A program made the position numbers and the translations under genes. The notes under the pieces were generated by a model. That model did not search any database and was not told the origin of the DNA. It saw only the letters and a list, made by a program, of their open reading frames with translations. From positions 31,519-95,518 of the forward strand of contig MCFE01000321.1 in assembly GCA_002104905.1 (NCBI GenBank): DNA of 64,000 nucleotides. Direction: 5' to 3'. This stretch comes from Basidiobolus meristosporus CBS 931.73 (taxonomy: Eukaryota; Fungi; Basidiobolomycota). Shown in pieces: positions 1-64,000 of the stretch. How positions within the stretch are numbered: position 1 is the first letter of the stretch; every line of letters begins with the position of its first letter.

Positions 1-870
1 TCCATCATATAGATTCTGTGTGAGGTAATAGAAATGACCTATATTAGGCAAAGCTAAGGTTTTGTCATCTATATGTGATCCAGATTATCCCATTTCTTGG
101 TACTGTGTCACACAGTGCATGGCCAAAAAAGGGTTTTTGTTCAACTCTGAGCTAGGATGGCCTTCTCCCACTTGAACCACGCCTATTTAGTGCTTCAGAT
201 ATACAAAAATGATCTAGAGTGGTTATGTTTGTTTTCCTTAAGTAACAATATCTATCTTTGATAGTTTACTTTGCTTACAATAGACTCAAGGTCCATTTGC
301 TTCTTGGTTTTCCCAGTTTGGTATCAGAAAGTACCATTGATTAGTGAGTAGGTACTTTCAGAGTGCTTCCACAGATTTGAATTGATACAACTGCTTTTGT
401 CTTATCAGAATATACATATGGAGTAGAGTCTAGTGCATTCCCAGAAGTGAGATTCTTCTCAACAAGGGCTTTGATCATCCTTATTCTCCTAATAGGTATT
501 TTCAGCCTTGAGCTTGGTTTGCAAGGCTAACTGATGTTCTCAGTGTCTTCAGAATCCATAAAACACATCTGGTTGATGCTTGCACCTTTTTTCTTTTAGC
601 TCCATAGACAGCACTGTGGTAGGGTTAACATACCTCCCACAGACAAGTTTATTCATGCAGTCATTATGATAAACCTATCCATATTTTATCTTATTAGTAT
701 TATCCCATTCTTCTTTTGCCCATATTATCAGTATTATCCCCATATGATGTTTACCCTGATTAGTTATTAGCATTAGTTATCCCAGATGTTATTCAGCTTT
801 GTGATCAATATATGTACCTACATAAGGCAAGTACCCGCGTCAAGTACCTGTGACACATGACCTAGGTCTG

Positions 871-1189
871 TGTTACCATCCCTACCAGTTCAATACCATA
901 TATGGTATTTCTATGTTGCACAGGTTTCAGATTACTGATTCCTGATTGGTTGAATGTGCTGTGCCTTTTAGAATCTTCCAGGACATTCTTGGCATATTTT
1001 TGGCTCATAGTGATGTCACCAAGAATTCCACTGATACCTGGAATCTTCTAGAACCTTGTCATTAATAATCACTTGGCAATCAGGAAAAGTATTTAAGGGA
1101 AAGCAATCCCTTGTCAATAAATCATCCCTTCTTTCAGTAACACTTCTACCTTATTGTTTAGCAGTTGATCACTGCACCTGCCTTTAACA
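871..1189 (+). repeat. Possible solo LTR of a second family
   Basis: TGTTA...TAACA termini, TATA-like ATTTAAG at 1091, AATAAA at 1116. No convincing TSD. Confidence 0.35.
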
Positions 1190-2639
1190 GTACATCTCAG
1201 ACCTGCCATCAAGGAGCTTTTCAGGGTAGTGCACAAGACACACAGAGGCCTTTGGAGACACTTGGAGCACCTAGGAAGCTAGAGAAGCAGGAGCTTTTAC
1301 CATTGTGATATATTGACAAAGACACCAGCAGTTTAGACACAGAGGGTATTGCACCCATCAGACACCTCACACACCTCAAGTTGTGTAGCTTCCCCCAGGA
1401 GTACCTCTACACCACCACAGCACACATCAAGACTTCTGCTTCAATGAATCTGCTCCAATTTAAACTACAATATCTGACAGATATTGTTGAAATTTCAGGG
1501 CTCTTGTGGAATTTGAGACTCAATGACTTTGTACAAGAGGCACCATGAAGCATATCTACACTGATAGATAGTCCAAATATAGCCTACATAGGTTTTGGCT
1601 CCATTTGGGGAGTACCTTAATTTGTAGTAGTAATATTTTCCCATTTCTCTACTTTTTCTTTTTCTGCTAAGGATCCAAGGGAGATCCCATTTGTGGGATG
1701 GTTCTGGACTCTCCTACAGGAGGGACCACAGCGTGCTTTAGCATAGAAGTCCTCATGAGATTGTTCCAGAATATATGACTATTTGGCAGTGAAATAATCA
1801 AAATTGGTATCCACTTAGATCTATCGTAACTTTAGATAGAGTTAACAAAATTTGATCAAATAAACTGCATTTGCAAGCTGTATAATATCTTATCCAAAAG
1901 CTTGTCTAACATTTATTGAGGTCATATAAATACATACAGCAATAAATTTCTTTGCAGTACTGAACCCTCAAATGCCAATATTACACAATTTTTTCAGTAG
2001 TGGTAGAGCACCAATGTACTATATATCTTGACATATTTGCATGCCAGCTTGCTAGACTCTGCTTCATAACAAGCTTCAGTAGGTACTAAATCAGTATCTT
2101 GGGGGCAAGTTCTTCTTCTCTACAGTAATATCCTCAGGAACATAGTCCTTTGGGCAGTGGTAGTATTTGTTAACTTTAGCAGAGCAATAGTGCAGAAAGT
2201 CTTTCTCCAGACTAGCAGAAAAGAATTCAAGGCAAAGTAGACACTAAGAGAATAGCAGACTTGGGGTTTATAACCTCTTGCAATATTCTGAGAAGTATTG
2301 GAAGTGGTAATGAGAATTAGTGGATTTACATGATATATAATTGTGGATTTATTGATCAAATGTATGGTATTTATACATTTGACAAAGTAGAGCATACAAA
2401 TATATAGGTTCTGTCATGGAAGGTTCCAAGAATATGTATGCAAAGTTTGGGGCTTTTGGACAACTTTAGGAAAGATTATAATCTGGGTACCTGATAATTT
2501 GGAGAAAATATTCTAGGTAGATCCTGACAAGAAATTTTGTCAGTACAGAATGATAATCAACAAAAAAGATCTATGTAACTAAGCAATCCTGAACATTAAG
2601 GAGACAACTTAATAATTGCAACACTCAAGAGCTTTGGTA

Positions 2640-2900
2640 TCATCAAGACTAAGACACAATCTCATCTATTTCAATGACATCTGTGTGGACTTAAGCATAA
2701 TTCATCCTTAAGAATGATGAAGAATTTGATCACCTTTATTGATGATAATACAAGATACTTATGGGTTAACTTTATGAAAACAAAAGAAGAAGCACTGTCA
2801 AAGTTCAGGGAGCTTAAAGCTGTGGTGAAAAGAGAAACTGGTGAAAATATCAAGCAAATATACTCTGACAGGGGTGGGGAATTGTTGTGTTGTATTATGA
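2640..2900 (+). pseudogene. Copia integrase fragment
   Basis: LITFIDDNTRYLWVNFMKTKEEALSKFRELKAVVKRETGENIKQIYSDRGGE matches the rve core and is near-identical to 11010-11160. Confidence 0.9.
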
Positions 2901-3194
2901 CTAGTATGAAGCTTGTTCTGCAATGTGGAAGCTAATCAACATTATACAAAAAGTTCCAGAATGCTAATACTAAAATAGCTTATTGGGAGTTTGATATACC
3001 AATAGAAGATAAAATTTTGACTAATATCCTCAATCTTGGGCTCAAAATATACTATAGACAATGATTCTCACTTCTACAGCAGTGTTCTGACCTTCTGTCA
3101 ACTACTGGGCTTATTTGCTTTTATGTAACTTGTTCTTATTTGGAAGTCACTTTCCTTTCTGAGAAAATATTTGCTAATATGGAAATTCTGAACT

Positions 3195-3400
3195 CCCTTT
3201 AACCTAAAGGGGTGTAGTGTAGAAGTCTCCAAAGGGGTCTTTAGACCTAGTGGGGTGTCTAAAGTGGTGTCAGAGTAAAGGGGCTTTTTGTAGTGGTCAC
3301 TAAAGTGGACTTTACACTAAAGGGGTGCCTGAAGGGGCTTCTTAAAGGTGTCTCTAAAGGTATATCTTTAGAATAAAGGGGCTTCTTAGAAGGGACTTTT
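3195..3400. repeat. Degenerate low-complexity repeat, ~12 copies of (C/T)AAAGGGG-like motif
   Basis: ctaaaggggt, ccaaaggggt, ctaaagtggt, taaaggggc and similar, at irregular spacing. Confidence 0.6.
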
Positions 3401-4059
3401 CTGACAGAAAAGTTGTAGTTTTCTTGTAGAACTTAGATTGATTCTTGTGAGCTTTGCAGTCTCTTTACTGATGTAGTACCAATCAAAGTCAGAATACTCA
3501 ACAGTGCCAGTGATGCAGAGGAAGTCTTATAACCTTTAAACTTGTAACTGTAGGGTGGAGATTCTGGAAAGAGATGCTCTCCTTTATTTCTCAGCTGGGG
3601 AAGTCATATATATGAAAATTCTGAGGGATCAAAGATTTGCGCAAGCAATACACATTATACAAAGCCAAAATTTTGCAGTGGTGCAGATTTCACATAGGTG
3701 TAGCACCTGTGAAAATATCACATGATTTTATTGGCTGATTTGAAAGCTACACACAATCAAAGTCACTATAGTAATTCTAGCAATAGAGGCCTAGTTTATA
3801 TGATAATTGGGCTCTTTGATCATAACTCCTTGAGTACTGCTTCAAATGAGCTGTAACTTGAACCATGTGTTGACTACTGAGCATTTGGCATGAAATAATA
3901 TTCTTGGGTGAATTTCTTGTCAGGGTCTGGAGCATTTGTCCTTCAAAGTTGAAAATTCTTGATCTTTCACTTGTGTGTTATGATAGTACAAAGCAAAATA
4001 AAGGAATGAGTCCAATATTGGTTTTGAGATATGTAGTAATGGAATACTTTCCATTACCA

Positions 4060-6010
4060 CAGAATATACCTCGAAACTCTTCATCCACTTCTGCAAAAAT
4101 GCTTGGGATAAAGTAAGAGATCACTGCACCATACTCTCCATAACAAAATGAGTGGCAGAATATGCAAGCAATACAATAAGTGAAACTGCAGATCTATATC
4201 CATTATCAAAATTATCCTATGATCTTTGAAAAGAGTCAGTTGTTACCGCAGTATATCTCAAAAATAGGACATTCCAGAGAACTCTATAATCATGGTTTGA
4301 TCTGAATTAGTGCATCAAGTGATTATTTCAGGGTCACAAGCCAGAGGATCCAACCAGATCAGGCATTGCCTGTATTACTATATCAATGAGGGTACAAAGG
4401 TATCCTATGCCTATTCAGTTCAAATTGATGGATCATAGACAGTAAAAGAGTTCCAAAATTGCCTATGGAGGAAGCTTGGAGATGTGCAATGACCACAGAG
4501 TATCAGGCCCTGATGAAAAATCAAACTTGGTACCTAGTCAAATTTCCAACTAGCAAAAAATGAAGTGGATGCTGATAGGTCATCTACAAAAATTACATTG
4601 CTGATTGTATATTTGAGAGACATAAAGTAAGATTTATGGCCATAGGATACTCTCAGACAAAGGACTGGACTACACTGAGACCTGTGCATCAGTAGCCAAT
4701 ATTAACTCCAGCATACAAATACTGGACTTCTTCTGTTGGATAGTGCCATATCAAGACATAAGTACCAAATGAGGCTATAGTGTCCCAAGGAGGCAAAGTG
4801 AGCCTATACATGGCCACAGAGTGTGAAATATAGCTCTGCATCTTCATGCAAAGCAGCCCCTGTGCTTCACCCATTGTGCTGGAGAAAATTCATTTTTTGA
4901 CCTTTTTTTTGGATCAATATTGTGCAGAATGTGCAAGAGCACAAAAAAATTGAAGACATGTGTCAGGTACTCATTACCTATGGCACTCTGAATCTAGCCC
5001 TGTGGCTTGTATCATGTCACAAAGATTATGGGACTATCTTGGTCCACTGGTACTATCAGGCACTATATTTAAATATTAGCCCTAAAGTAAAACCTATAAA
5101 AGCACTTATAGTGCCAGATAGTACCAGTGGACCAAGATAGTGCCATGCATTTTGGTGACATGATACAAGCCACATGGCTAGATTCAGAGTGCCATGAGTA
5201 TTGGGTATCAGATCCATGTCTTCAGTTCTTCTGTGCTCTTACACATCCTGAACAATGTTGATTCAACAAAAAGGTCAAAAAATGGATTTTCTCCAGCGCT
5301 ATGGGTGAAACACAGGGGCTGCTATTCATGAAGATGAAGAGTCATGTTTTACGCGCTGTGGCTAAGTTTAGGTCCACTACACCTTTCTGGCATGTAATGG
5401 CACTATTTGGCACCCATGGCTCAATGTAGCACTATCCAACACAACAAGTCTACTAACCAGTGCAGCCAAATATAGGTTTTTGGCTCCTCAAATGGATGTA
5501 AAGCTACATTTTGGTATGGAGAACTTGATGAAAACCTGTACATGGACCATCTTGATATGTTGGTTGGGCAGGATAACCTAAGCTTGGTCTGCAAGATTAA
5601 AAATCTCTATATGGTGTGAAACTATCATCAGGAGCCTAGAATTGCAAAATAGATTTGTATTTGGAATCACTGAGTTTCCATAAATGTACTGCCAGCCACT
5701 GTATCTACTATAAGCTAGGTAGAGCAAGTCTGGCTCTGTTAGCTCTCAATATTGGTGCAATTATTATAGCCAGCAATAACTGAGAAACACTGGAAGAGAC
5801 TAAATCCAGCACATCTAAGGAGTTCAAGATGTCTTATCTAGGAGAACTCAGTTACTGCTTAAAGATAAATTTCTCTCTAAATAGAGGTATCTAAGTTATC
5901 ACCCTTAGACGGTCCAATTATATTCAAGATAAGTTCAAGTGGTGCTATGTGGATGACTGTAAGTTAGCAGCTACCCTAATGAAGCCAAACCTTAGCTTTG
6001 TCCAGGTTTT
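4060..6010 (+). pseudogene. Copia integrase/RT fragment, interrupted by the foldback element
   Basis: EYTSK..IHFCK, MTTEYQALMKNQTW.LVK and QMDVK..F..GELDE align with the better preserved copy at 11150-12760. Confidence 0.85.
4725..5450. mobile_element. Foldback/MITE-like element: ~342-bp inverted arms, 41-bp AT-rich spacer
   Basis: Arm 4725-5066 is the reverse complement of arm 5108-5450 along its length (e.g. atcttggtccactggtactatc / gatagtaccagtggaccaagat). Flanked by TACTG / TACTA inside a copia RT frame. Confidence 0.88.
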
Positions 6011-6184: not shown

Positions 6185-9100
6185 TTATACTTTTATATGG
6201 TCTTAGAGTAATGGGCACTGAGAATAGATTTAGGAAGGCTCTTAGAACAAGTGTGCAAATTGTGTGCTGTTTTGGCAACTTATCAAATCTTTATGACTGG
6301 GTATCTGATATTTTGATGAAAATATTCCAGGTAGATCCTAACAAGGAATGTGGTCAGTATTCTCTAAGATTTGTAGGTAAAGATCTGAGTGGCAAGTTAG
6401 GTGAGTATTTAGGTGGATTTATGAGCCTTCACAATACTCCTGCTGAACTAAACGCTCATACTGAATAGTTCTGATATTGACCTATGATTTTCAAATTTGT
6501 CTCTAGCTTATGGCTTCATAGATTTGTCTGCAATCATTTAATCTATAAGACAGCAAGCTGATTTAACTAAGTTATGTTCTGTAGTTTTACATATGATATA
6601 ATGTCTAATATCTTTCTGTATAGGTCCAGTATAAGAAGTTGGATTTCTACCTAAACTTGTATACATCCTTCCTTATCTTGAAACAAAGTAATGAGTACTC
6701 TTGACATAAGTCTAAGTCTTTAAAAAGCTTTCTGAGCCCCATTACCTCTTTTGTAGCTTCACAGGCTGCCATATACTCTGCCTCTGTGGTGGAAAGTGTG
6801 TCAGTAGGTTGCTTTCTTGAATTCCATGAACTTGCTCCTTTGCAGTGAAGAAAGGTGTATGCCATGATGGATCATCTGTCTTCTAAACTTTGTCCCCAGT
6901 CTGCATGGGTATATTTTGTGAGATCCTGTTCTGCATCTTTATTGGTGTTCCTTGAGCAGATATCAGCAGCTCCTTTTAGGTATCTAAAAATCCACTCAAC
7001 TGCTGCATATGATCAGATCCATAGTTCTGATTATGCTGGCAGACAACTCCCACCAAGTATGCATATCTGCTCAGGTTTCAAGCATAAAATGTGTTGGACT
7101 ACCAGACATAGCTTAGTAAGCAAATGCTGGCTTTCAGATGGCCCCAGACTCACTTGACTTGGTTGAGCTTGGACTAACTTAAGGTTTGTCCCCATTGGAG
7201 TAGCTGCTGATTTACAGTCTTCCATTTGGTACTTCTTGATTATATCTTGAATATACTTTGACTGGGTAAAGGTGATAGTCTTGGTACTTCTGTTATTGTA
7301 GAACATAATTCCTAATGAATAACTGGGTTCCCTAGACTGGATATCTTGGGCTCCTTAGATATGCTGGATTTGATCTCTTCCATATAGTAGATACTATGGT
7401 CAGCAGTACCTTTTGGCAACTAAATGATTTCTAGTAAGAATCTGTCTTGCATATCCAGGCTCTTTGTCATTGTTCCAGAATATATAGAAAGCTTTTGAGC
7501 TTTCAGACCAAACAGGGGCTATTTGATCAGCAAGCCCTCCAGGCTGGTCTATGTACCTGCTCTCATCAAGCTCTCCTCTCAGAAATGCAGTTGTTGCATC
7601 CACTTGGTGAATCAAAAATCTTTTTTGGCTGCAATAGTTAGCATTTATATGCTGGATTAAATCTTGCTACTGGTGCAAAGGTCTCAGTGAATTTAAGTCT
7701 TTTATTTGAGAGTATTCTTGAGCCACAAGTCCTGCTTTGTAACCTTCAACTGTACCATCAGCCTTGTAATTCTCTTGAAGATACATCTATATCTGATTGA
7801 GTTTTGGCTGATTGATAATTTGATTAAGTTACAAGTTTGATTTGCATTAGGACCTGACACTCCCCAGTCATTGTAGACCTCTAAAACCTTGTCTGAGGGC
7901 TATTTAGAGTCTTTTTTACAGTCTGAGTCTTATTAATGTGGACTGAATAGGTATATGCTAGAAATGTAACCTTGCTGATATAGTATATGGGCTAGTTCTG
8001 GTCTAGTTGGGTCTACTGGCTTGTAATACTAGAATGATCACTTCTGAGATATTTCTTGGCACTGATTCTGGCTGCACCATGGTTATCAAGTCCTCTGGAG
8101 TGAAAGGAATCTCATTGTTTTCCTCTGATTCAATCCTGACTGGTAATGCACTTGAGGTCAGATTTTTGTAATCATCTGATGTCATTTTTTGTAAAAAATC
8201 TTAATTTCTGTTAAGAACACATCATTGAACTAGATCCACTTCATTGCTTTGGAATTGTAGAGTCTAATATACCCTACTATCAGTGCAGTAGCCCAAAAGG
8301 TTGCATTTCACACTTTTGGGCTCAAATTTTGACTGATTTCAGAGCAGTTTCTTGGCATATGCTGTGCACCCAAGTGTTCTTAGATATACTGCACTTGGCC
8401 TGTACTCATATCATGCTGCAAGTGCAGTAGGCTCACAAGTTATTCTGTCATAGCTCCTATTTCAAGGGATACAGTTGTGGCAATTAATTTGCCCAAAAAT
8501 TGAAGGATAATATGATACTTGATCATAGAGCTTGCCATTTATACAACTCATCTGTTTGCACATCTGGTCACTTCATTTTGCTGTAGGGAGTATGGCACAG
8601 TAGTCTCTAGCTTATCCCATGAATGTTGCAGCAGTGTATGAAAAGTTTTGAGGTATACTCTTGATCATTGGCAGAGCATATTTTCTTGATTTTTCACTGG
8701 TTTCTCTCTCTACCATGGCTTTAGACTCTCTGAGCTTTGACAAAGTTTCTTCCTTTTTTCCCATGAAGTAGCCCCTTGTGTATCATGTATTATCATTAAT
8801 TAAAGTGACAAAGTACTTCATCATGCCTAAGGATAAATATTTGTAGGACCATATTGACCAGGATAAATTAAAGCTAATTTTTCTTAGTTTCTATTAACTC
8901 AGAGCCCCTGAGCAGCTCTCTGTCGTTTTTCCCATATATGCAGGCCTCATAGTGCTACAAGTTAACTGGGGAATCAAATTTACTTTAGAAATTAGCTAGT
9001 CTGATCATTTTGCACCAATAAACATATGATGTGTTCAAATCTCCAGTGCCAATGCATTGGTGCTTCCTTATTTAAGTTACCTGCGTTGGCTTCCTGATAT

Positions 9101-9630: not shown

Positions 9631-10420
9631 CTCCCACTCTGCTAAATGCACATACTGACCAGTCCTAATTTTGACCTAAGATATTCAAGCTCATCTCTAG
9701 CTAATGTTTCATAAATATGTCTGCAATCATATCATCTGAGGGACAGTAAATTAAGCTAACTTGTTACGCTCTATAGCTTCACGTATGAAATGATGTCAAA
9801 TATTTATGTGCTTGGTTCTAGCATGAAAGGTTGGATCTCTACCTAACTTTGTACATCCTTGATTATCCTGAAATAAGTAATAGGTGTTTTTTGACTTAGG
9901 CCTAAATCTGTACAAAGCTTTCAGAACCACATTGCTTCTTCTGTAGCTTCACAAGCTGCAATATACTCTGCCTCTGTGGTAGAGAGTGCTACGGTTAGTT
10001 GCTTTTGTGAATTCTATGAAACTGCTCCTTTGCAGTAAGGAAAGGTGCATCCAATGGTGGATCATCTGTATTCCAACTGATATCCCAATAAACATCATAG
10101 TATGCTGCAAGATCCTGTTTTAACTCCTTATAGTTATATCTTAAGCAGATATCCACAGTTCCTTTTAGGTATCTAAAAGTCTGCTTAACTGCTCCAATAT
10201 GATCAGATCCATAGTTCTGATAATGCTGGCTGACAACTCCCACTGAATATTAGATATCTGGACATGTTCTAAGCATGAAATAAATCAGACTGCTGACTAT
10301 AGTTTGATAAGGAAAGTCAGGGCTTTTGGATGGTGTCAAGCTCTCTTGATTTGGTTGAGTGTTGACCAAGTTAAGGCAGACTGGTGCTTCAGAAAGTGAG
10401 ATAGTCAGCAGAAAAAGCCT
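9631..10420 (-). mobile_element. 3' internal part (RT end/RNase H) of a second minus-strand copia copy
   Basis: FPYQTIVSSLIYFMLRTCPDI and AVKQTFRYLKGTVDICLRY, then an STTEAEY-type segment at ~9950-10000. Confidence 0.85.
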
Positions 10421-55225: not shown

Positions 55226-56686
55226 TTAGTTGTGTGCCTCAGTGGCAGGGAAATCGGCGTCTGGCGACTTGGTGCCGGTGATTTCCTCGATACTGCGACC
55301 CTTGGTTTCAGGCAAGAGGAAAAGAACTCCGATAAATCCGACGATACACGCAACCACGAAGATCAAAAATACGTAGCCCTCCATGGCGTTCTTCAATGAT
55401 GGAAAGAAGAAACCAACAACAAAGTTACCAAACCAATTGAGCCCAAGCGCCGAGGAGGCCACGGTCGAGACTGCTCTCGTAGGAATAAGTTCGGAGATGA
55501 TCAAAAATGGAATAGGTCCCATTCCGAGAGCGAAGGCGACAACAAAGGCAAACAGTCCAAGGATGACGAGCCCGGAGTCGTTACATTGGATACCAATGAT
55601 CATGAGTACGTTGAAAGAGGCCATACCAGCCAGACTCAAAAGTACTAGGAACTTTCTTCCGACGCGGTCGATAAGAAGGATGGTAACCACCGTGGCAAGT
55701 AGATTGATCGCTCCCACGCCAACGGTTAGGTACTGTGCAGTCTTGTTACCGTAAATGGAGGTGAAGATTGATGTGGAATAGTACATGATACCGTTGATAC
55801 CACAAAGTTGCTGGATTACACAAAGGAACATGCACATGAAAGCATGCTTACGGGTCAACGGGTCACTCATGATGAATCGGAACCCGTCCATCACAGAGGT
55901 ATTGTCTCCGGTGGATTTAGCATGAGCACGAGCATCGATCATGGTTTGGAGCTCACCACTAATGTCCATACCCTTGCGCAGTTTCAGGAGTGACTTCTCC
56001 GCATCCTCCACACGATCCTTCGATATGTAGTAACGAGGGGTTTCCGTGATAAACGACAAGGTAACCAGCTGGAAAACGGCGATGGCGCCAGTAAGTGCTA
56101 AGCAGACACGCCATCCAGCACGGGTAGATAGCCCAAGACCAGCCGCCTGAGTGACTAACTGACCAATGACACACGTAAGCTGAGTCATGGCACCGTAGGC
56201 ACCACGCACCCTGGTGGTTGAAACCTCACCGATGTAGGTTGGGAGAACTACAGTTCCGAAGCCAGAGCCAATACCGGTGAATGCACGGCCAACGATCCAC
56301 ATACCCTTGTTTTTAGAAAGACCGATGAGCAAAGCACCAACAATGAAGAAAACATTGTTGAAAAGGAGAGAGTTACGGCGTCCAAACTTTGCCTGGGCCC
56401 AACCGGCAGAAAGGCCGCCAATGGCACCACCAATGGAGAAACTACTCACGGCGAAGCCCCACATCCAGTCGCCCATAGGGAAACAGTATGGGAACCCATT
56501 CACCTTCTCATCGGGGTGGTCACAGTTCACAATGGATGCTTGAATAATATTGGTATCGGAGGTATTCCAGCCATTGTTGAAGGATACAATACAAGCAATG
56601 GAAACACACAGCAGTGTGTAGAGCGAGAAGCCAGCCTCAGACGAATCCATCGGACCCTTCTGTTCTTTTGAAGAACGGTTGAGCAT
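55226..56686 (-). CDS. MFS sugar porter (GLUT-like), single exon; last recognisable host gene before the telomeric array
   Basis: FGRR, GRAFTGIGSG, YIGEVS...RG, PRY-like ETPRY, QQLCGINGIMYYS, IDRVGRK, PETKGRSIEEI. Confidence 0.95.
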   Translation of the reverse strand: MLNRSSKEQKGPMDSSEAGFSLYTLLCVSIACIVSFNNGWNTSDTNIIQASIVNCDHPDEKVNGFPYCFPMGDWMWGFAVSSFSIGGAIGGLSAGWAQAKFGRRNSLLFNNVFFIVGALLIGLSKNKGMWIVGRAFTGIGSGFGTVVLPTYIGEVSTTRVRGAYGAMTQLTCVIGQLVTQAAGLGLSTRAGWRVCLALTGAIAVFQLVTLSFITETPRYYISKDRVEDAEKSLLKLRKGMDISGELQTMIDARAHAKSTGDNTSVMDGFRFIMSDPLTRKHAFMCMFLCVIQQLCGINGIMYYSTSIFTSIYGNKTAQYLTVGVGAINLLATVVTILLIDRVGRKFLVLLSLAGMASFNVLMIIGIQCNDSGLVILGLFAFVVAFALGMGPIPFLIISELIPTRAVSTVASSALGLNWFGNFVVGFFFPSLKNAMEGYVFLIFVVACIVGFIGVLFLLPETKGRSIEEITGTKSPDADFPATEAHN

Positions 56687-58776
56687 GTTGTGTGATAGGA
56701 TCGATGGATGTAGATAAAGCTCAATAAAGTGGATGTGTAATGGGAATTAGACCACAAACGACATTGGAAAACGGTATTTATATCGTGCCAGGGAATTTGG
56801 ACCATTCCAACGGTGTCCGTTTTCGCTGGCTATTTCCATAAGTAGATTTCACTGGATAAGTAAGAAATCAATACTTGTGTCTGGACTATACCCATGATTG
56901 TCAAGTTTAGTCCATTACTTCTCCCGCCAAACTCAACTAATTCTCCGCGCCCTTGGCAAGAACAGGTCGTATATAAATATGTATATATCAAGTGTATGGT
57001 ATGTCTATTACACTTGGAGGTAAAGAACAACCTGTGTTGAGTGTTACCATCGCAGCAAGTTGGCAAGTTGGAAAGAACTGACCTCAACAATGCTCGTGGA
57101 GGCCGCAATTTCGTTAGGGCCGTACAATACCGAATTTCCTTTCCAATTGAACATATCCGTTCGATGCACCGTAATATAAATATACCTAATCAAGCCTGAG
57201 GTCTTTCTGGTTAACTTTAAAAAATGCCGCCAGTAAAGTGCACGGAAAACATCAACTCCCAATTGCTAAGATCCAGCTGATTATTGGTTCCCCGAACGTC
57301 ATAATCCTAATTCAGAGGATTCTGTGTTGTTTATGGAGACACGGGGTAGGTAAATGCATGGGCATCTATGTGTGATAGGACAGTTCTAGAAGCGTGCTCG
57401 TGGGCATTGCTTAATTGAGCTTCTTGCCTAGTTGAATCCTCAGCCAAGCCCTAGAAATGCTTGGACTTACCCGGGCACCACACTTGAATGATAATTGTGG
57501 AGGGGTGGTTAAGCGTGGCATTATACAGAGTTCGGGTCAGGTTTGGTAGCGTTTATTATTCTTTATTGTTAGGCATCACGAGCTATCAAACCATATACAC
57601 ATGAGCCTTTGGTATGGTACAGCTTGTGGTTCAATGCACATAAGTCATTGCGGTGAGTTTGTGCTTACTGACTCCCAGCAAGTCGGTTATACACATTGCG
57701 CTTCCGGTTGGACAGTTATTGCGAATTATCGGAGCCATCAGTTTAAGGTAATCCCAATGATATCATCTTGAAAATCGGGAAATTGATCCAATTGAAGAGA
57801 ATTTCCTTCGATCAGCAACCTATATACGGAAACACGATCGGTGTATTAGCTTTGGATTTATTCAGTGCTGTAATAATAATTCCTATTTGTTGTACAATCT
57901 GCATCACATACTCTTGACTTCGAAGTTGAGAGCTATTGGAATACTGTCGATAGTGCTTGTGGGTTTTTAACGATGTCATACGGTGTGGTTGATGTGAATA
58001 TCACCGGGAACTGCCTCTTTTTCGCTAGCTAGTGTGTTACTCCGCCCTGACACACATTCTAGTAATGTAGAAAATGAATCCTGTTCTCGGCAGCGTTACT
58101 TTTATATACTTCATACGACTCTAACATTCTGCTGGTATGTCATGCAGGCGCAACTTCGATAAAGCATCTGAAGTATCAGGATGTTGAGGACTATTGGATG
58201 CTCCTGGTCTGATGCTGGAGCATGAATGGAAATTTGCCTGGTTTAGAAGGTGTGGGTAATCTTTGTACACTGTAGATTTACACAAGGCTACAGTAGTAAT
58301 CCAAACTGGATATGAAATCATGGTGCTACCCTCGAAGGATACCGATAGATCAGTTGATAAGCGATGAGACTCTGGTACTGAAGTCTTTGGACGATCCTTT
58401 GCTAAGTATAATTCTATTCTCTACTAGAAAGAAGGAGTGAATAGCTTGCTTTTGAATACAAAGAAAGATCTACCCGCTGCTCGTCTACCGGCTGATATTC
58501 TCTTTATCTTGATGGCTGTTAACAAAGTCTGCTTGAATGCTGGAGCAAGAGGACATGTAGATCGTATAGGATACAATCTACGCTTAGCCCTCCTATTAAT
58601 GTTACATTAGGTGAATCGACCCAGAAAGGATGTGATAAGCAAATTGTGTTTCAACCGTATTTTACGTAACATACATGAACTTATGTATATCGCTCATACC
58701 AGCTAAATGCCCTAATTAGTATATATATATCTATTCTGGTGAATTATGGTTCTTGTGCTGGTTAAACATCATGTAA

Positions 58777-59311
58777 GGGTTAGGGGGTGTGTGACAATTC
58801 CTAACAGGTGAAACCTTTGTTTCAATAACCCAAAATGAAGAAGTCAAGGATTACATGGGGAGCTTTTTTACAAGTGAATGAAGAGAAGGGTCATTTTGGG
58901 AATGCCTATAAGAAAGAGTACTAAGTTCAAGAGGAGTAAAAACAGATCCTAAGAAAAAATCCAAGAAAAGGCCAGCAGAACACCATCATTATATCAGCTG
59001 AATTCCAAGTTTCTCAAACTGGCAACTCTCAGTAACTCATTTACTGGCTGTTGGGTGGATAAGCAGACATATTTTCCAGGAGAAGACTAGGCCAACTAGC
59101 ATTCATAACAAAATTCTTAATAAGCTGCTTGTTCCTTCCACTAAAACTTGCAACTGAAAATTTGAAGGAAAGCCACCAGCTGAATGCCTGCAAAATACAA
59201 CTAGAATTCCAGCTGAACACTAGGTGATAATCAGATGAGTACCAAGTTTGAGATTTTATGTAGGGAGAGTCTAGTGGTACTGGAGGGATAACTAAAGCAT
59301 GCAGTGGCTCA
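58777..59311 (-). pseudogene. M1: diverged, decayed RT-C-terminus module (second subfamily)
   Basis: 58851-58952 encodes LGSVFTPLELSTLSYRHSQNDPSLHSLVKKLPM*, 15/33 identical without gaps to the C-terminus of M8, with the stop at the same position. Confidence 0.75.
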
Positions 59312-59870
59312 TAGGGTTAGGGGGAAGACAGTCACCAACAAGTGAAATCTTTATTTCAATTGAGACAAAAAAGCCAATGCTACTGTTGTAGCTTTTGTAC
59401 AAAAGTGTGTAGCTTCAGGAATTTGTAGGTAAGCTAATAGGGAGAGATGATAGTTCTTCAGTGCTCAAAACACTGTTCAGTGGAAAGGGGGGTAGCAAGA
59501 GGGGTAGGAATGCTTTGTGAGCAACATTGACAAGGGGAATATGATAAAGATTGATATTCATCATAAAGGGAGTGTGCGGCTTCAGATATTGCTGTCAAAG
59601 GTCTGCCAAGTACTTCAGGTAGGCCAGCTTGGGTTTTTCTGACTGCAGAATATAATGAGCAAACTTCTTGACTTTGGGATCTCAGAGTATAGTTCTCCAG
59701 CAGGAGCCAGGCATAGTGTGGTGTATTCTCTTCCAGGCCTTGATTAGTGGGTTGTTGCAGTGGAGAAGTCTGAGATATAACCTGGTTCTAAGGTAGAGAA
59801 GTCCAATCTTATAGGGCATAAACCCAAAAGCACCAAGAATTGCATGTCTGTAGGGGCTTTCAGGCAGATT
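59312..59870 (-). pseudogene. M2: 5'-truncated RT-C-terminus module with a nonsense mutation
   Basis: Aligns to M8 over its full length. TGG>TGA at ~59596. Confidence 0.88.
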
Positions 59871-60420
59871 TAGGGCTAGGGTTAGGGGAGGGAAAGTAGG
59901 GGGAGGAAAGTCACCAAGTGGTGAAATCTTTATTTCCTTATAACAAGTATCTAAAGAAGCCAAGTTAATCTGAAGTTATTCCTAGAACACTAGGTCTGAG
60001 AGATATCTTCCTGGTAAGCCAGGTCTGAGAGTTGAGAAACTGAGTGGTACTATATTTCCTAGTTAGCTAGGTCCAAGAGAGATTTCCTGGAAAGCCAGGC
60101 CTGAGAAGTAAGAATCTGAGTATATCTGAGCTAAGTTATACTGGTTTGCAATAGCTGAATTGTGGCTGGAATGGTCAGTAGACTGGGGGAACTCAGAGGA
60201 ATTTCTGAGTGATTACTGGCCATATTTACTAGGCAAATCTGGCCAATTAGCATTTCAAGGACTTCAGCCAATCAGAGCCTTTACTTTGCTTGATGGTTGA
60301 TCAAGCCATCTCCCAATAAGCACACTTCAATTAATTAATCAAGCTTTGCTAGATCTAGGATTTCAACCCACAACCATGGGTATGGAAGGGTTAGGAATAA
60401 CCACAAGTCTAAGTGTTCTT
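59871..60420 (-). ncRNA. M3: ~0.53-kb non-coding hairpin module (candidate non-autonomous RNA)
   Basis: Aligns to M6 with the same distal endpoint. Four CCT(A/G)G-N4-C(T/C)AGG stems. The short ORF of M6 is interrupted here. Confidence 0.55.
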
Positions 60421-60596
60421 GGTTAGGGGGTTAGGGGGAGCAAAGTAACCAAGTGGAGAAATCTTTATTTAATTATGACAAGTATCTAAAGAAGCCAAGT
60501 TAATCTGAAGTAATTCCTAGAAAGCTAGGTCTGAGAGATATCTTCCTGGTAAGCCAGGTCTGAGAGTTGAGAAGCTGAGTGGTACTATATTTCCTA
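60421..60596 (-). mobile_element. M4: truncated non-coding hairpin module
   Basis: 3' ~175 nt of the M3/M6 type, broken at AGTTAG within the third stem. Confidence 0.85.
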
Positions 60597-60913
60597 GTTA
60601 GGGGGGGAGACAGTCACCAACAGGTGAAATCTTTATTTCAGTTGAAACAAAGAAGCCAGCACTACTGTTGTAGCTTTGATATAAGAGTGTGTAGCTGAGG
60701 GGAATTTGTAGGTAAGTTAATAAGAAGTAATGATAGTTCTTCAGTGCTCAAGACACTGTTCAGTGGGAAGGGGGGTAGCAAGAGAGGTAAGAATGACTTG
60801 TGAACAACATTAATGAGGGGAATGTGATAAGGATTGATATTCATCATAAAGGGAGTGTGCTGCTGCAGATATTGCTGCCAAAGGTCTGTCAAGTACTTCA
60901 GGCAGGCCAGCTT
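60597..60913 (-). mobile_element. M5: truncated RT-C-terminus module
   Basis: ORF 60662-60892 is nearly identical to the M8 C-terminus. Broken at GGGTTT. Confidence 0.88.
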
Positions 60914-61445
60914 GGGTTTTAGGGGGGGAGGAAAGTCACCAAGTGGTGAAATCTTTATTTACTTATGACAAGTATCTAAAGAAGCCATGTTAATCTGAAG
61001 TAATTCCTAGAAAGCTAGGTCTGAGAGATATCTTCCTGGTAAGCCAGGTCTGAGAGTTGAGAAGCTGAGTGGTACTGTATTTCCTAGTTAGCTAGGTCTG
61101 AGAGAGGTTTCCTGGAAAGCCAGGCCTGAGAAGTGAGAATCTGAGTATATCTGAGGTTAGTTGTACTGATTTGCGGTAGCTGAATTGTGGCCGGAATGGC
61201 CAGTAGACTGGGGGAACTGAGAGGAATATCTGGGCGATCACTGGCCAAATTTACGAGGCAAATCTGACCAATTAGCATTTCAAGGATTTCAGCCAATCAG
61301 AGCCTTTACTTTGCCCGATGGTTGATCAAGCCATCTCCCAATGAGCACACATCAATTTATTAATCAAATTTTGTTGGATCTAGGATTTGAACACACAACC
61401 ATGGGTATGGAAGGGTTAGGGATAACCACAAGGCTAAGTGTTCTT
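60914..61445 (-). ncRNA. M6: ~0.53-kb non-coding hairpin module, CpG-retaining copy
   Basis: Stems at 61006, 61035, 61083 and 61111. CCAAT boxes at ~61269 and ~61293. Internal GGGTTAGG at ~61413. Confidence 0.55.
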
Positions 61446-61578
61446 GGTTTAGGGGGAGGGAAAGTCACCAAGGTAGGTGAAATCTTTATTTGATTGCAGA
61501 CAAGTCTAACTACAAATAAAGAAGCCAGCTGGGAATAGAAGATTCCCAAAGTAAACACGAAGTTGAATATGAATAAAT

Positions 61579-62307
61579 CTAAGCTAAAGTTAAGGCAGTA
61601 TCCCAGAGTACACTGGAGTTCAGGTTCATGGGGGAGTGAAGTAGATAAGCCTGAGAGATATAATAATCCTTTAAGAAGTGGGTAACAGCAGGTGAAGGGG
61701 AGTTTTTGATAAGTGAAGTGAATCTTGAGATTAGAGATTCCTCTAATGAGAAGGTCTTGTAAACTGGAGAATCAGGAAACTCTTTAAAGGCATGGTCAGT
61801 AGGTTCCCAGTAAAACTGGTCAGAGACATTTTGAGAGAACTCTTTAGCAATACTTTTGTCAAGTACTACCTCCAGAGTGTGATGGTTGATAAATCTCATG
61901 TTAACAATCTTGGATAAGTTGTAACCTTGTTGCTTGAGATACATCCTATGCTCAGATATAGGAATAAACTCCACATTGGCAAAGTAGCAGACAGCCCAGT
62001 CAGTAGCAGGAGGCAAATCAGAAGTAGCAGGAAACTTTCTTTTAGTCTTGGGAGGGGCAGCAGGATGTCTTGAGGAAGTAGGAACAGGCTTTTTGACAGC
62101 TTCAGAGTAGGAAGAGTGAGCAGGAGCAGATGATTCTTGGGGAATCTTGTTGACAGGAAGAGTTGGCACAGGGACAATAGATTCTTGCAGATCAGAAAAG
62201 GCAGAAAACAGCTTTTGAACTTGCTTCTTGAGTAAAGCATTTTCAGCTTCAACAAGTGCAAGCCTTTCCTCAAGGAAGGAAATCTGAAGGGAATGGAGTG
62301 AAGGCAT
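61579..62307 (-). CDS. M7 ORF: intact 242-aa LINE-like ORF1 (N-terminal coiled coil), with its own 3' cis-element
   Basis: MPSLHSLQISFLEERLALVEAENALLKKQV coiled coil, SYSEAVKK, KIVNMRFINHHTLEVVL. Assignment to ORF1 is inferred from the architecture. Confidence 0.7.
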   Translation of the reverse strand: MPSLHSLQISFLEERLALVEAENALLKKQVQKLFSAFSDLQESIVPVPTLPVNKIPQESSAPAHSSYSEAVKKPVPTSSRHPAAPPKTKRKFPATSDLPPATDWAVCYFANVEFIPISEHRMYLKQQGYNLSKIVNMRFINHHTLEVVLDKSIAKEFSQNVSDQFYWEPTDHAFKEFPDSPVYKTFSLEESLISRFTSLIKNSPSPAVTHFLKDYYISQAYLLHSPMNLNSSVLWDTALTLA

Positions 62308-62347
62308 AAGAAACAAGAAGAAGAGGGTAGGATGGGGTGGGTGGGTG

Positions 62348-63200
62348 GGAAAATTAGCAGGGAGAAGAGAAGGAAGGAGCAAAAATTCCGAAAGTCAGAA
62401 TTTATAGATGGATGGATTATTCCTGGGTTAGGAAAATTAGCAGGGAGAAGAGAAGGAAGGAGCAAAAATTCCGAAAGTCAGAATTTATAGATGGATGGAT
62501 TATTCCTGGGTTAGGAAAATTAGCAGGGAGAAGAGAAGGAAGGAGCAAAAATTCCGAAAGTCAGAATTTATAGATGGATGGATTATTCCTGGGTTAGGAA
62601 AATTAGCAGGGAGAAGAGAAGGAAGGAGCAAAAATTCCGAAAGTCAGAATTTATAGATGGATGGATTATTCCTGGGTTAGGAAAATTAGCAGGGAGAAGA
62701 GAAGGAAGGAGCAAAAATTCCGAAAGTCAGAATTTATAGATGGATGGATTATTCCTGGGTTAGGAAAATTAGCAGGGAGAAGAGAAGGAAGGAGCAAAAA
62801 TTCCGAAAGTCAGAATTTATAGATGGATGGATTATTCCTGGGTTAGGAAAATTAGCAGGGAGAAGAGAAAGAAGGAGCAAAAATTCCGAAAGTCAGAATT
62901 TATAGATGGATGGATTATTCCTGGGTTAGGAAAATTAGCAGGGAGAAGAGAAGGAAGGAGCAAAAATTCCGAAAGTCAGAATTTATAGATGGATGGATTA
63001 TTCCTGGGTTAGGAAAATTAGCAGGGAGAAGAGAAGGAAGGAGCAAAAATTCCGAAAGTCAGAATTTATAGATGGATGGATTATTCCTGGGTTAGGAAAA
63101 TTAGCAGGGAGAAGAGAAAGAAGGAGCAAAAATTCCGAAAGTCAGAATTTATAGATGGATGGATTATTCCTGGGTTAGGAAAATTAGCAGGGAGAAGAGA
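62348..63200. repeat. 83-bp tandem repeat x10.3, each unit containing GGGTTAGG
   Basis: Units start at 62348, 62431, 62514 ... 63178. One G>A variant is shared by units 7 and 10. Confidence 0.97.
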
Positions 63201-63268
63201 AGGGTTAGGGGGGGAGACAGTCACCAACAGGTGAAATCTTTATTTCAGTTGAAACAAAGAAGCCAGCG

Positions 63269-63838
63269 CTACTGTTGTAGCTTTGATACAAGAGTGTGTA
63301 GCTGAGGGGAATTTGTAGGTAAGTTAATAAGAAGTGATGATAGTTCTTCAGTGCTCAAGACACTGTTCAGTGGGAAGGGGGGTAGCAAGAGAGGTAAGAA
63401 TGACTTTTGAACAACATTAATGAGGGGAATGTGATAAGGATTGATATTCATCATAAAGGGAGTGTGCTGCTGCAGATATTGCTGCCAAAGGTCTGTCAAG
63501 TACTTCAGGTTGGCCAGCTTGGGTTTTTCTGACTGCAGAATATAGTGAGCAAACTTCTTGACTTCAGGATCTCCAAGTATAGTTCTCCAGCAGGAGCCAG
63601 GTGTTGTGTGGTGTGTTCTCTTCCAGGCCTTAATCAGTGGGTTGTTGCAGTTGTGAAGTCTGAGGTATAATCTGGTTCTAAGGTAGAGAAGTCTGATCTT
63701 ATAGGGCATAAACCCAAAAGCACCAAGAATAGCATGTCTGTAGGGGCATTCAGGCAAATGAGGCACCAAGGAGGTAATGCACCATACTGCAAACTTGTCA
63801 AGCTTAGTGCAGTCTCTAGAAGTAAGAGAGAGAAGTGG
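63269..63838 (-). CDS. M8 ORF: C-terminal ~189 codons of a non-LTR-type RT protein, cut off by the telomere
   Basis: The frame is open up to the telomere: LDKFAVWCITSLVPHLPECPYRHAILGAFGFMPYKIRLLYLRTRLYLRL resembles the LINE post-RT thumb region. No YxDD core is present. Confidence 0.65.
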   Translation of the reverse strand, partial: PLLSLTSRDCTKLDKFAVWCITSLVPHLPECPYRHAILGAFGFMPYKIRLLYLRTRLYLRLHNCNNPLIKAWKRTHHTTPGSCWRTILGDPEVKKFAHYILQSEKPKLANLKYLTDLWQQYLQQHTPFMMNINPYHIPLINVVQKSFLPLLLPPFPLNSVLSTEELSSLLINLPTNSPQLHTLVSKLQQ

Positions 63839-64000
63839 TTAGGGTTAGGGTTAGGGTTAGGGTTAGGGTTAGGTTAGGGTTAGGGTTAGGTTAGGGTTAG
63901 GGTTAGGGTTAGGGTTAGGGTTAGGTTAGGGTTAGGGTTAGGGTTAGGGTTAGGGTTAGGGTTAGGGTTAGGGTTAGGGTTAGGGTTAGGGTTAGGGTTA
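63837..64000 (+). repeat. Telomere (TTAGGG)n with three TTAGG variants
   Basis: Uninterrupted G-rich tract running to the window end. Confidence 0.99.

Follow-up and report, generated by a model that had tools for sequence, protein, structure and literature searches.

Retrotransposons specialised for telomeres are the textbook case of a truce between a host and its transposons. In stringent LINE/SINE pairs such as UnaL2 and UnaSINE1 of the eel, the two partners carry a common 3' stem-loop and terminal repeat, which the LINE reverse transcriptase (RT) recognises in trans. The closest analogues of the chromosome end described here are Drosophila HeT-A/TART/TAHRE, Bombyx SART/TRAS and Magnaporthe MoTeR1/2. 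The Drosophila elements stand head to tail with distal 5' ends and are 5'-truncated to varying extents; HeT-A, which is gag-only, occurs beside gag+pol members, whose pol carries an APE domain, and shares UTR sequence with one pol-bearing lineage. All of this recurs in the fungus Basidiobolus, where the UTR sharing links a gag-only element, E1, to the LINE termed LINE_B. Bombyx SART1 and TRAS1 (R1 clade) are, like the elements found here, APE-type LINEs tied to telomeric repeats and coexisting with telomerase; their 3' UTR structure matters for initiation, a role that the 3' module of Basidiobolus may share. No SINE or gag-only partner of SART/TRAS is given in PMC10088271. Magnaporthe MoTeR1/MoTeR2 and Fusarium FoTeRs likewise are fungal, telomere-embedded and arranged in head-to-tail arrays. 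The 77 nt at the 3' end are common to MoTeR1, which encodes an RT, and the non-autonomous MoTeR2, and MoTeR/FoTeR elements have telomere-like sequence near the 5' end and 5' tandem repeats (PMC7367193, PMC12857005). The remark in the initial annotation that no such organisation was known in fungi overlooks these elements, which differ in endonuclease and clade (PMC7367193, PMC12857005).

The window analysed here comprises 64,000 nucleotides of one contig of Basidiobolus meristosporus CBS 931.73. Positions 58777-63836 hold a head-to-tail array of eight units, all with their sense on the minus strand and their 5' ends toward the (TTAGGG)n cap (Table 1). We assign a probability of roughly 80% to the reading of this terminal array as a community of telomere-targeted non-LTR retrotransposons. 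Its members would be two autonomous LINEs (LINE_A and LINE_B), a 523-nt SINE and two gag-only elements (E1 and E2), united by one 3' module. All eight same-orientation modules of the initial annotation, with 5' ends telomere-ward and followed by (TTAGGG)n, could be mapped, and its order RT'-RT-nc-nc-RT-nc-ORF1-RT holds for M2-M8. M1 is no RT fragment: tblastn detects neither ORF1 nor ORF2 similarity, and the RT' label was dropped. Sense nt 48-366, the core of M1, belong to a dispersed repeat of which at least 40 internal copies occur in either orientation (77-83%). The last ~120 nt of the unit match about 18 other sites (75-84%), and its degenerate LINE_A-like tail no longer forms the hairpin (fold z = -0.3).

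Table 1. Features of the terminal array (positions in the 64,000-nt window)
Feature	Positions	Strand	Description	Basis or score
M1	58786..59313	-	Old degenerate unit; LINE_A-like tail without hairpin; core is a dispersed repeat	
M2	59320..59869	-	3' end of LINE_A type (reference positions 4112-4662), truncated at 5'; an older copy or a subfamily	
M3	59901..60423	-	SINE-like element, non-coding, full length (523 nt)	Reference positions 1-523 at 92%
M4	60436..60601	-	SINE 3' 166 nt (positions 358-523); tail hairpin mutated	
M5	60601..60920	-	LINE_A 3' 320 nt	98.4% to intact copy
M6	60926..61448	-	Full-length non-coding SINE	
M7	61455..63203	-	ORF1-only (gag-only) element E1; 5' truncation falls inside its own 83-bp repeat array	
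E1 ORF	61579..62307	-	242 aa	BLASTP and AF2 model
Tandem repeat in E1 5' region	62348..63203	-	83 bp x 10.3	TRF, 99% matches
Example 3' cis-element	63203..63262	-	Folded tail	MFE -15.8 kcal/mol, z = -5.35
M8	63208..63842	-	Outermost unit, LINE_A 3' 635 nt	98.6% to intact copy
Terminal telomere tract	63837..64000	+	(TTAGGG)n, few TTAGG variants	TRF period 6, 27.8 copies

The first line of evidence is the 3' tail, one conserved version of which ends seven of the eight units. As the initial annotation had stated, the ORF1, RT and non-coding cargoes are unrelated except in their terminal stretch, the common part being the last ~45 nt and, 25-45 nt upstream of these, a GGCTTCTTT box; each of the three cargo types also has its own AAATAAAG. 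The search with this 3' cis-element, proposed there for all chromosome ends, gave 1,542 tails in the 89.5-Mb assembly, compared with none in a reversed control; the sharing of the tail is therefore far beyond chance. All matches that could be placed relative to a contig end lie within about 22 kb of one. The SINE tail is 84-91% identical to those of LINE_A and LINE_B, while the E1 and LINE_B tails agree at 93% over the last 45 nt and at 87% over the preceding 30 nt.

The tail folds into two helices. In the example listed in Table 1, CUUUGUUUC pairs with GAAAUAAAG in helix 1, and helix 2 (UCACC-UGUU-GGUGA) is followed by a single-stranded CUGUCU-C7-UAACC end. In the general module, helix 1 sequesters AAAUAAAG, helix 2 has the form UCACC-loop-GGUGA, and the terminus consists of a single-stranded C-run and about one CCCUAA unit, complementary to the telomeric G strand. 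Helix 2 is found in all families; helix 1 contains a covarying pair, which is C-G in LINE_A, G-C in LINE_B and E1, and A-U in E2 and in a gag-only relative from B. ranarum with the same ORF-UTR-tail layout.

The second line of evidence comes from the RT-bearing units. LINE_A is a bicistronic element of 4.66 kb (ORF1, 502 aa; ORF2, 917-922 aa), whose full 922-aa ORF2 frame is kept in at least 50 copies at ~98% identity (59 copies scored); the 949-aa ORF2 frame of LINE_B is intact in at least 15. ORF2 matches RVT_1 (Pfam, residues 461-673, E 2.6e-25), and among proteins of solved structure human L1 ORF2p comes closest (E 5e-13). Among relatives in general, the next-nearest are insect APE+RT elements at ~30% identity. 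The initial annotation had suggested recovering a full-length RT module and checking it for an endonuclease; in the copies recovered, the N-terminal domain of ORF2 has an APE/ExoIII fold (AF2 model, pLDDT 78), with APE1, ExoA and the TRAS1 endonuclease (1wdu) as top Foldseek matches (E ~1e-9, probability 1.0), and Pfam finds no restriction-enzyme-like endonuclease domain in ORF2. The endonuclease motifs N, YxP, GDxN and SDH are conserved across intact copies and relatives. On domain content and modelled fold, the RT element is an APE-type LINE with predicted endonuclease activity; ORF1 lies upstream of ORF2, 3' ends are intact and 5' truncation is variable, as expected of a LINE. Among the 13 chromosome ends studied in detail, the 37 LINE_A copies with intact 3' ends start anywhere between positions 1 and 4631. 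In the window itself, M2 is 89.3% identical to an intact LINE_A copy (ORF2 aa 761-910 at 86.7%), and the ORF2 frame of M8 stays open as far as the telomere junction (97% identity with the full ORF2 across 58 aa).

These properties bear on two alternative readings. The initial annotation proposed one LINE split into obligatory, separately mobilised ORF1, RT and non-coding RNAs, and the array does contain ORF1-only, RT-bearing and non-coding units that each have their own tail and little else in common, with the ORF1-only frame intact in most of at least 150 copies. Nevertheless, the contiguous full-length element without internal cis-elements that it named as incompatible with a split is present: in L049 (sense 654-5316), ORF1 and ORF2 of LINE_A are contiguous without an internal tail, and C29, C3, C83 and C507 hold further such copies. 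ORF1 lies directly upstream of the RT in every full-length copy seen, many with intact frames, as well as in the bicistronic relatives from other assemblies (the closest LINE_B relative carries its own ORF1), and the RT units of the window are 5'-truncated copies of the bicistronic LINE_A. A split LINE is very improbable and was rejected; that unrelated RNAs share one 3' signal and are stacked with their 5' ends distal is a part of the proposal that stands. Still less credible are endonuclease-deficient Penelope-like elements priming on G-overhangs. Athena/Coprina and the bdelloid Terminons do resemble the array in having a 3' end complementary to the telomere, 5' ends that point distally and short runs of telomeric sequence from one unit to the next, but they belong to another RT class, lack an APE domain and carry hammerhead ribozymes. 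Here ORF2 joins a LINE-type APE domain to RVT_1, the ORF1/ORF2 layout and 5' truncation are typical of LINEs, and no Rfam family, hammerhead included, matches at E <= 1 in 56000-63840.

The remaining cargoes are non-autonomous. BLASTP aligns the E1 ORF with the C-terminal domain of LINE ORF1 (35% over 163 aa, E 2e-21), and the AF2 model of its protein shows a coiled-coil helix, a disordered linker, an RRM-like beta-alpha-beta-beta-alpha-beta domain and a helical C-terminal end. Judged by sequence, the E1 protein is a diverged paralogue of LINE ORF1, which makes E1 a gag-only element rather than the missing segment of a LINE; its 3' UTR matches that of LINE_B. E2 is a second, diverged gag-only family (~46% identical) of the same architecture. 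Each unit of the 83-bp repeat in E1 contains a sense-strand CCTAACCC telomere-type motif (8-mer census). The 523-nt unit is non-coding, shares its 3' tail with the LINEs and has a defined 5' end, 15 of 23 copies with intact 3' ends on the 13 chromosome-end pieces being full-length with starts at nt 1-5; it behaves as a SINE-like LINE partner. In M6, an A-box-like TAGCCTTGTGG at nt 13 and a B-box-like GTTCAAATC at nt 57, candidate elements of an internal Pol III promoter, occur in the absence of any T4 run (P ~0.05 by shuffling), and CCCTAACCC lies at nt 28; neither ARAGORN nor Rfam detects a tRNA in the SINE. On sequence grounds, the SINE and ORF1-only units must have RT supplied in trans.

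The third line of evidence is provided by the junctions. At 65 junctions, the median spacer between units is 5 nt long and the longest 25 nt (64/65 are <=11 nt), whereas terminal TTAGGG tracts measure 159-213 nt. Near-nil spacers beside long terminal tracts point to addition at nearly bare G-strand ends or to template jumps, and argue against random insertion inside normal ~170-nt telomeres. The further a unit lies from the end, the lower its identity to an intact copy (Spearman -0.56, p 6e-4), although this trend in age is not monotonic, with an average of 97.7% in the 10-20 kb bin. Arrays produced mainly by recombination between ends (break-induced replication or segmental duplication), to which retrotransposition at present adds little, seem distinctly improbable to us. 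Recombination has a precedent in the expansion of MoTeR arrays (PMC7367193, PMC8381367), and recurrence of the M4-M5 junction in four other contigs (89-96% identity) implies that the arrays also owe part of their form to composite units being duplicated or co-mobilised. The 37 LINE_A truncation points are almost all distinct, however, unit orders vary among the 13 ends, and the flank of this chromosome end is single-copy; intact ORFs, dozens of them at 97-99% identity, point to recent activity.

For the community of telomere-targeted elements, we infer trans-mobilisation, the priming step and any endonuclease role. The LINE ORF2 protein would bind the two hairpins of its own RNA in cis, or those of SINE and gag-only RNAs in trans; the C-rich RNA end would pair with the G strand and its 3' OH, and reverse transcription would extend the chromosome outward, so that each new unit would lie distally with its 5' end outermost. 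Telomerase, the TERT RBD of which is present in the genome, would then re-cap the end. Priming may occur on ends with ~1.5 repeats or fewer; alternatively, on reaching the 5' end of one RNA, the RT may jump to the tail of another. It should be noted that conservation of the APE domain would be superfluous for pure end-priming, and hints at nick-dependent insertion. A SART/TRAS-like route, in which ordinary target-primed reverse transcription starts from an APE nick in the G strand of duplex TTAGGG, with no end-priming, is the strongest competitor, though in our opinion an unlikely one. It would account for the APE fold and the conservation of most catalytic residues in intact copies and relatives, for the place of the TRAS1 endonuclease among the best structural matches, and is in keeping with PMC7265360, according to which SART1 can use TTAGGG repeats, three or more being needed. 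Random nicking, on the other hand, would leave long proximal tracts rather than 5-nt spacers; the array units carry no poly(A) tails, and the metal-binding Glu of the endonuclease is replaced by Asp in the LINE lineage.

Comparison with the described systems brings out several differences. Unlike the Drosophila elements, those of Basidiobolus do not replace telomerase repeats, the ends being TTAGGG-capped and telomerase present; the junctions are formed by a C-run/CCCTAA end, not by oligo(A), a SINE participates, and the host is a fungus. SART/TRAS carry poly(A) and insert at a fixed site within repeat tracts, in contrast to units with no poly(A) and almost no proximal spacer. MoTeR/FoTeR belong to the CRE clade and have a restriction-enzyme-like endonuclease, a single ORF and spacers of half a repeat to >20 repeats, whereas the Basidiobolus LINEs are APE-type with two ORFs, and their partners are a gag-only element and a SINE. 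Pairs of the UnaL2/UnaSINE1 type are dispersed genome-wide; in Basidiobolus, copies are located at the ends of chromosomes and finish in a repeat complementary to the telomere. Our literature search found no paper on a fungal APE-type telomeric LINE, on a telomeric SINE or, flies apart, on a gag-only partner.

More tentatively, and with greater doubt than confidence, the telomere might be regarded as two-layered, telomerase providing the cap and the retroelement guild healing critically short or broken ends; guild RNAs would then have a telomerase-RNA-like template end and 5' telomere seeds inviting re-capping. If true, this would be a convergent fungal counterpart of HeT-A/TART/TAHRE with telomerase still present; no gag-only telomeric element would have been known before except in flies, and no telomere-specific SINE at all. 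To our knowledge, gag-only telomeric helpers are known from Drosophila only, which has lost telomerase. Basidiobolus appears to hold the full cast (two LINE and two gag-only lineages and a SINE, with ~1,500 tails) with telomerase active, and may offer a tractable view of the beginnings of a telomeric retroelement system. The two hairpins and telomere-complementary end constitute a defined RNA module for studying how an RT is targeted to a DNA end, and the LINEs are a natural case on whether an APE endonuclease becomes dispensable given a free 3' end. The arrays are also relevant to the assembly and annotation of chromosome ends in early-diverging fungi.

The initial annotation interpreted the terminal array as a single LINE distributed over separate RNA segments. 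This interpretation is rejected, since a full-length element of the first LINE lineage (LINE_A, locus L049) carries ORF1 and ORF2 together, an arrangement that the annotation itself had held to be incompatible with a split element, and relatives from two other assemblies likewise have ORF1 directly upstream of ORF2. The element was recognized in long gaps between tails (copies of the 3′ module common to all families) by an ORF matching RVT_1 and, weakly, APE. In L049, two tandem repeats of ~100 nt occur in the 5′ UTR, which also has AACCCTAACCCTAA internally; ORF1 (502 aa) has a CxxC motif, a coiled coil, and a conserved C-terminal domain. LINE_A ORF2 spans 917–922 aa; of the 59 genomic copies scored, most have the 922-aa open frame intact, at ~98% identity. 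The second lineage, LINE_B, whose ORF2 is 45–52% identical to that of LINE_A, retains a 949-aa frame in at least 15 copies (97–99% identity), and P0005, the database sequence closest to LINE_B (66%), is likewise bicistronic. The contigs of relatives P0001 and P0005 end before the tail and are therefore silent on telomere position. The RT-bearing element is thus an ordinary autonomous LINE, of which the three RT units in the window are 5′-truncated copies.

LINE_A ORF2 matches RVT_1 at E 2.6e-25 (Pfam), and the solved structure nearest to it is human L1 ORF2p. Full-length copies were required for the Pfam assignment; the window's RT fragment or ORF1 alone yielded nothing useful. The N-terminal 230 residues of ORF2 are predicted to form an APE/ExoIII nuclease fold (model pLDDT 78), which Foldseek matches to APE1, ExoA, and the TRAS1 endonuclease at ~1e-9, whereas a PDB sequence search with the endonuclease domain alone gave no match. 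The endonuclease motifs N, YxP, GDxN, and SDH are kept in the alignment with relatives. The metal-binding Glu of APE is replaced by Asp throughout the LINE lineage (residues ~30–36 of L049 ORF2; P0001 and P0003), the context being CLID here versus LISE/LLSE in relatives. A Penelope-like identity is rejected on the grounds that ORF2 combines RVT_1 with an APE fold and that Rfam, at E ≤ 1 over window positions 56000–63840, returned no match, neither hammerhead nor tRNA.

Direct reading of window positions 57500–64000, together with repeat and ORF analysis, bears out the chromosome end. Eight units lie internal to (TTAGGG)n, every one of them sense on the minus strand; read on the plus strand, every unit opens with a brief telomere-like sequence, followed by a G-run and AGTCACC-loop-GGTGAAATCTTTATTT. 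The unique sequence flanking this end is present in a single copy, so that contigs C614 and C616 are not copies of this end. Among named homologues, those closest to a sugar-transporter gene in the window are from B. ranarum (88%) and B. meristosporus CBS 931.73 (85%). With unit boundaries and types assigned by BLAST against reference units, the module order proposed initially holds for units 2–8 and fails for unit 1, which has no similarity to RT or ORF1. The core of unit 1 is a dispersed repeat with no relation to the telomeric families; the final ~120 nt of the unit are those of an older, ~18-copy family, and its tail did not form the hairpin on folding.

Coordinates of the telomeric elements and associated features
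Feature	Location	Orientation	Remarks
(TTAGGG)n terminal tract	window 63837-64000		
Unit 1 core, dispersed ~320-nt repeat	window 58948-59266	both strands (internal copies)	at least 40 internal copies, 77-83% identity
Complete LINE_A	locus L049		4,663 nt; 5′ UTR, ORF1, ORF2, tail
Tail-only mini-units	L033/L039 (C32) ~10337-10369; L040 (C2) ~8659-8685; L046 (C82) ~7512-7540	sense	
Tail-only mini-unit	L053:641-660		
Recurrences of the LINE_A/SINE junction	G000:C463:137613-137859; C96:12809-13038; C204:12841-13084; C1234:174262-174483		89-96%
Telomere-type 8-mers	LINE_A nt 242-248 (L049); SINE nt 28-30 (window ~61419-61421 region)	sense	
Telomere-type 8-mers	window 62348-63203	sense	one per 83-bp E1 repeat
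Further telomere-type 8-mer	LINE_A nt 2724	sense	inside ORF2
Telomerase RBD (PF12009) match	G000:C935:173109-173423		two pieces, one in-frame TAG between

The structure of the tail was derived from folding and from sequence-by-sequence comparison across five families and B. ranarum, and comprises two helices. In helix 1 (5–12 bp, loops of 4–21 nt), N′-AAAUAAAG is the pairing partner of a CUUU(A/G)UUU-N box. Next to the loop, LINE_A has a C-G pair, LINE_B and E1 have G-C, and E2 and B. ranarum have A-U, a compensatory change. Helix 2 (UCACC-loop-GGUGA; 4 bp in B. ranarum) has a family-specific loop and is followed by a single-stranded C-run of 4–10 nt and then UAACCC. Since AAUAAA is located within helix 1, it may have a structural role in addition to, or in place of, that of a poly(A) signal; a poly(A) tail was found in none of the genomic copies. 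Tail-only mini-units of 20–35 nt, consisting of helix 2 and the C-run, lie between full units, in B. ranarum as well, and look like products of reverse transcription that stopped almost as soon as it had begun.

The tail pattern AAATAAAGATTTCACC-N3-8-GGTGACT has 1,542 matches in the 89.5-Mb assembly, compared with 0 for the same pattern read backwards over the whole assembly. On contigs of known size, all matches fall within ~22 kb of the contig end. The split by strand, 1,421 on the contig minus strand and 121 on the plus, places the telomere at the right end of most contigs. The combination of 1,366 contigs with ~1,540 tails may reflect very many chromosome ends or an assembly convention.

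Two families, E1 and E2, carry ORF1 only. The unit 7 ORF (242 aa) is 35% identical over 163 aa to the C-terminal domain of LINE_A ORF1 (E 2e-21). The E1 protein model contains a 40-residue helix, a disordered linker, a beta-alpha-beta-beta-alpha-beta domain, and a helical end, a predicted layout that is that of a LINE ORF1 chaperone; Foldseek returned no significant match for the ORF1-only model, only weak RRM-like ones. E1 has at least 150 genomic copies, stop-free in most full-length cases at 92–98% identity, and no full-length copy in the examined pieces has an ORF2 downstream. E2 is ~46% identical, with a like architecture and its own tail variant. A 49%-identical relative in B. ranarum shows the order ORF, ~70 nt of UTR, AAATAAAG, hairpin, C-run, and TAA, with its 5′ end toward the contig end and unique genes on the 3′ side. 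As the intact E1 copies, the E2 family, and the B. ranarum relative with the same plan show, gag-only elements form an established lineage that is diversifying. Over its last 75 nt, E1 is far closer to LINE_B (93% and 87% for two segments) than to LINE_A, which suggests that LINE_B drives E1.

The 523-nt non-coding unit behaves as a SINE. Among 23 copies with intact 3′ ends, 15 start at nt 1–5, and the tail is closest to that of LINE_B (91%), which the tails predict to be the partner of SINE and E1 alike. The unit has an A-box-like motif at nt 13 and a B-box-like motif at nt 57, candidate elements of a Pol III promoter, and no T4 run; neither ARAGORN, run over the window, nor Rfam called a tRNA. 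The unit also contains an internal tandem duplication (76 nt × 1.9, window 61000–61146).

Array dynamics were assessed on 13 chromosome-end pieces. Pure segmental duplication is rejected because unit order differs at all 13 ends and the truncation points of 37 LINE_A copies are nearly all distinct. Identity to the intact copy drops with distance from the end (Spearman −0.56, p 6e-4), averaging 98.8% in the outer 3 kb versus 94–96% at 3–10 kb. At window 60480–60720, a LINE_A tail is joined to a SINE truncated at nt 358; as this junction recurs in four other contigs, duplication or co-mobilization of composite read-through units occurs as well. A site 15–18 kb from a contig end (L031:4400–4620, C1) holds an internal LINE_A copy preceded by CCCTAACCCTAACCCT, with inverted TTAGGG-like repeats ~180 nt further out, and looks like what remains of an earlier chromosome end that has since been extended.

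A 2023 survey of telomere-resident retroelements lists SART/TRAS, GilM/GilT, Zepp, MoTeR1, Tx1-1_ACar, HeT-A/TART/TAHRE, and Athena, and does not mention a SINE (PMC10088271). MoTeR1, which encodes RT, and MoTeR2 share terminal sequences of 860 nt (5′) and 77 nt (3′); both belong to the CRE clade, which has a REL endonuclease, and are separated by spacers that can be as short as half a repeat or exceed 20 repeats (PMC7367193). FoTeRs belong to the same clade (PMC12857005). SART1 is described as requiring at least three repeats as well as a poly(A) tail (PMC7265360). Literature searches on telomeres or retrotransposons in Basidiobolus yielded nothing relevant. The Basidiobolus array resembles the fly system (HeT-A/TART/TAHRE) in cast and geometry, stringent LINE/SINE pairs in tail sharing, and Athena/Coprina in its telomere-complementary end.

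In the mechanism that we propose, the LINE RT would recognize the two-hairpin module in cis or in trans, and a G-strand 3′ OH would pair with the C-rich RNA end to prime reverse transcription. At 65 junctions, the spacer in telomere register after the C-run has a median of 5 nt and a maximum of 25 nt, and is ≤7 nt in 83%; assembled terminal tracts measure 159–213 nt. Erosion alone is insufficient to explain such short spacers, because full-length SINEs and LINEs have them too. The near absence of spacers favors priming on nearly bare ends, or template jumps between RNAs. An endonuclease-dependent route, for which the conservation of the APE domain speaks, appears unlikely to us, given that random nicking inside a normal telomere fits poorly with spacers that are almost absent.

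Alongside these elements, the genome encodes a telomerase RBD, and the match on C935 is probably part of an intron-containing TERT gene. Telomere-type 8-mers occur in the elements in the sense (C-strand) orientation only, nearly all in 5′ regions; none was found in the opposite orientation, versus 0.05–0.4 expected per element. Once an element is outermost, its 5′ 8-mers could serve as telomerase seeds or as sites for telomere-binding proteins.
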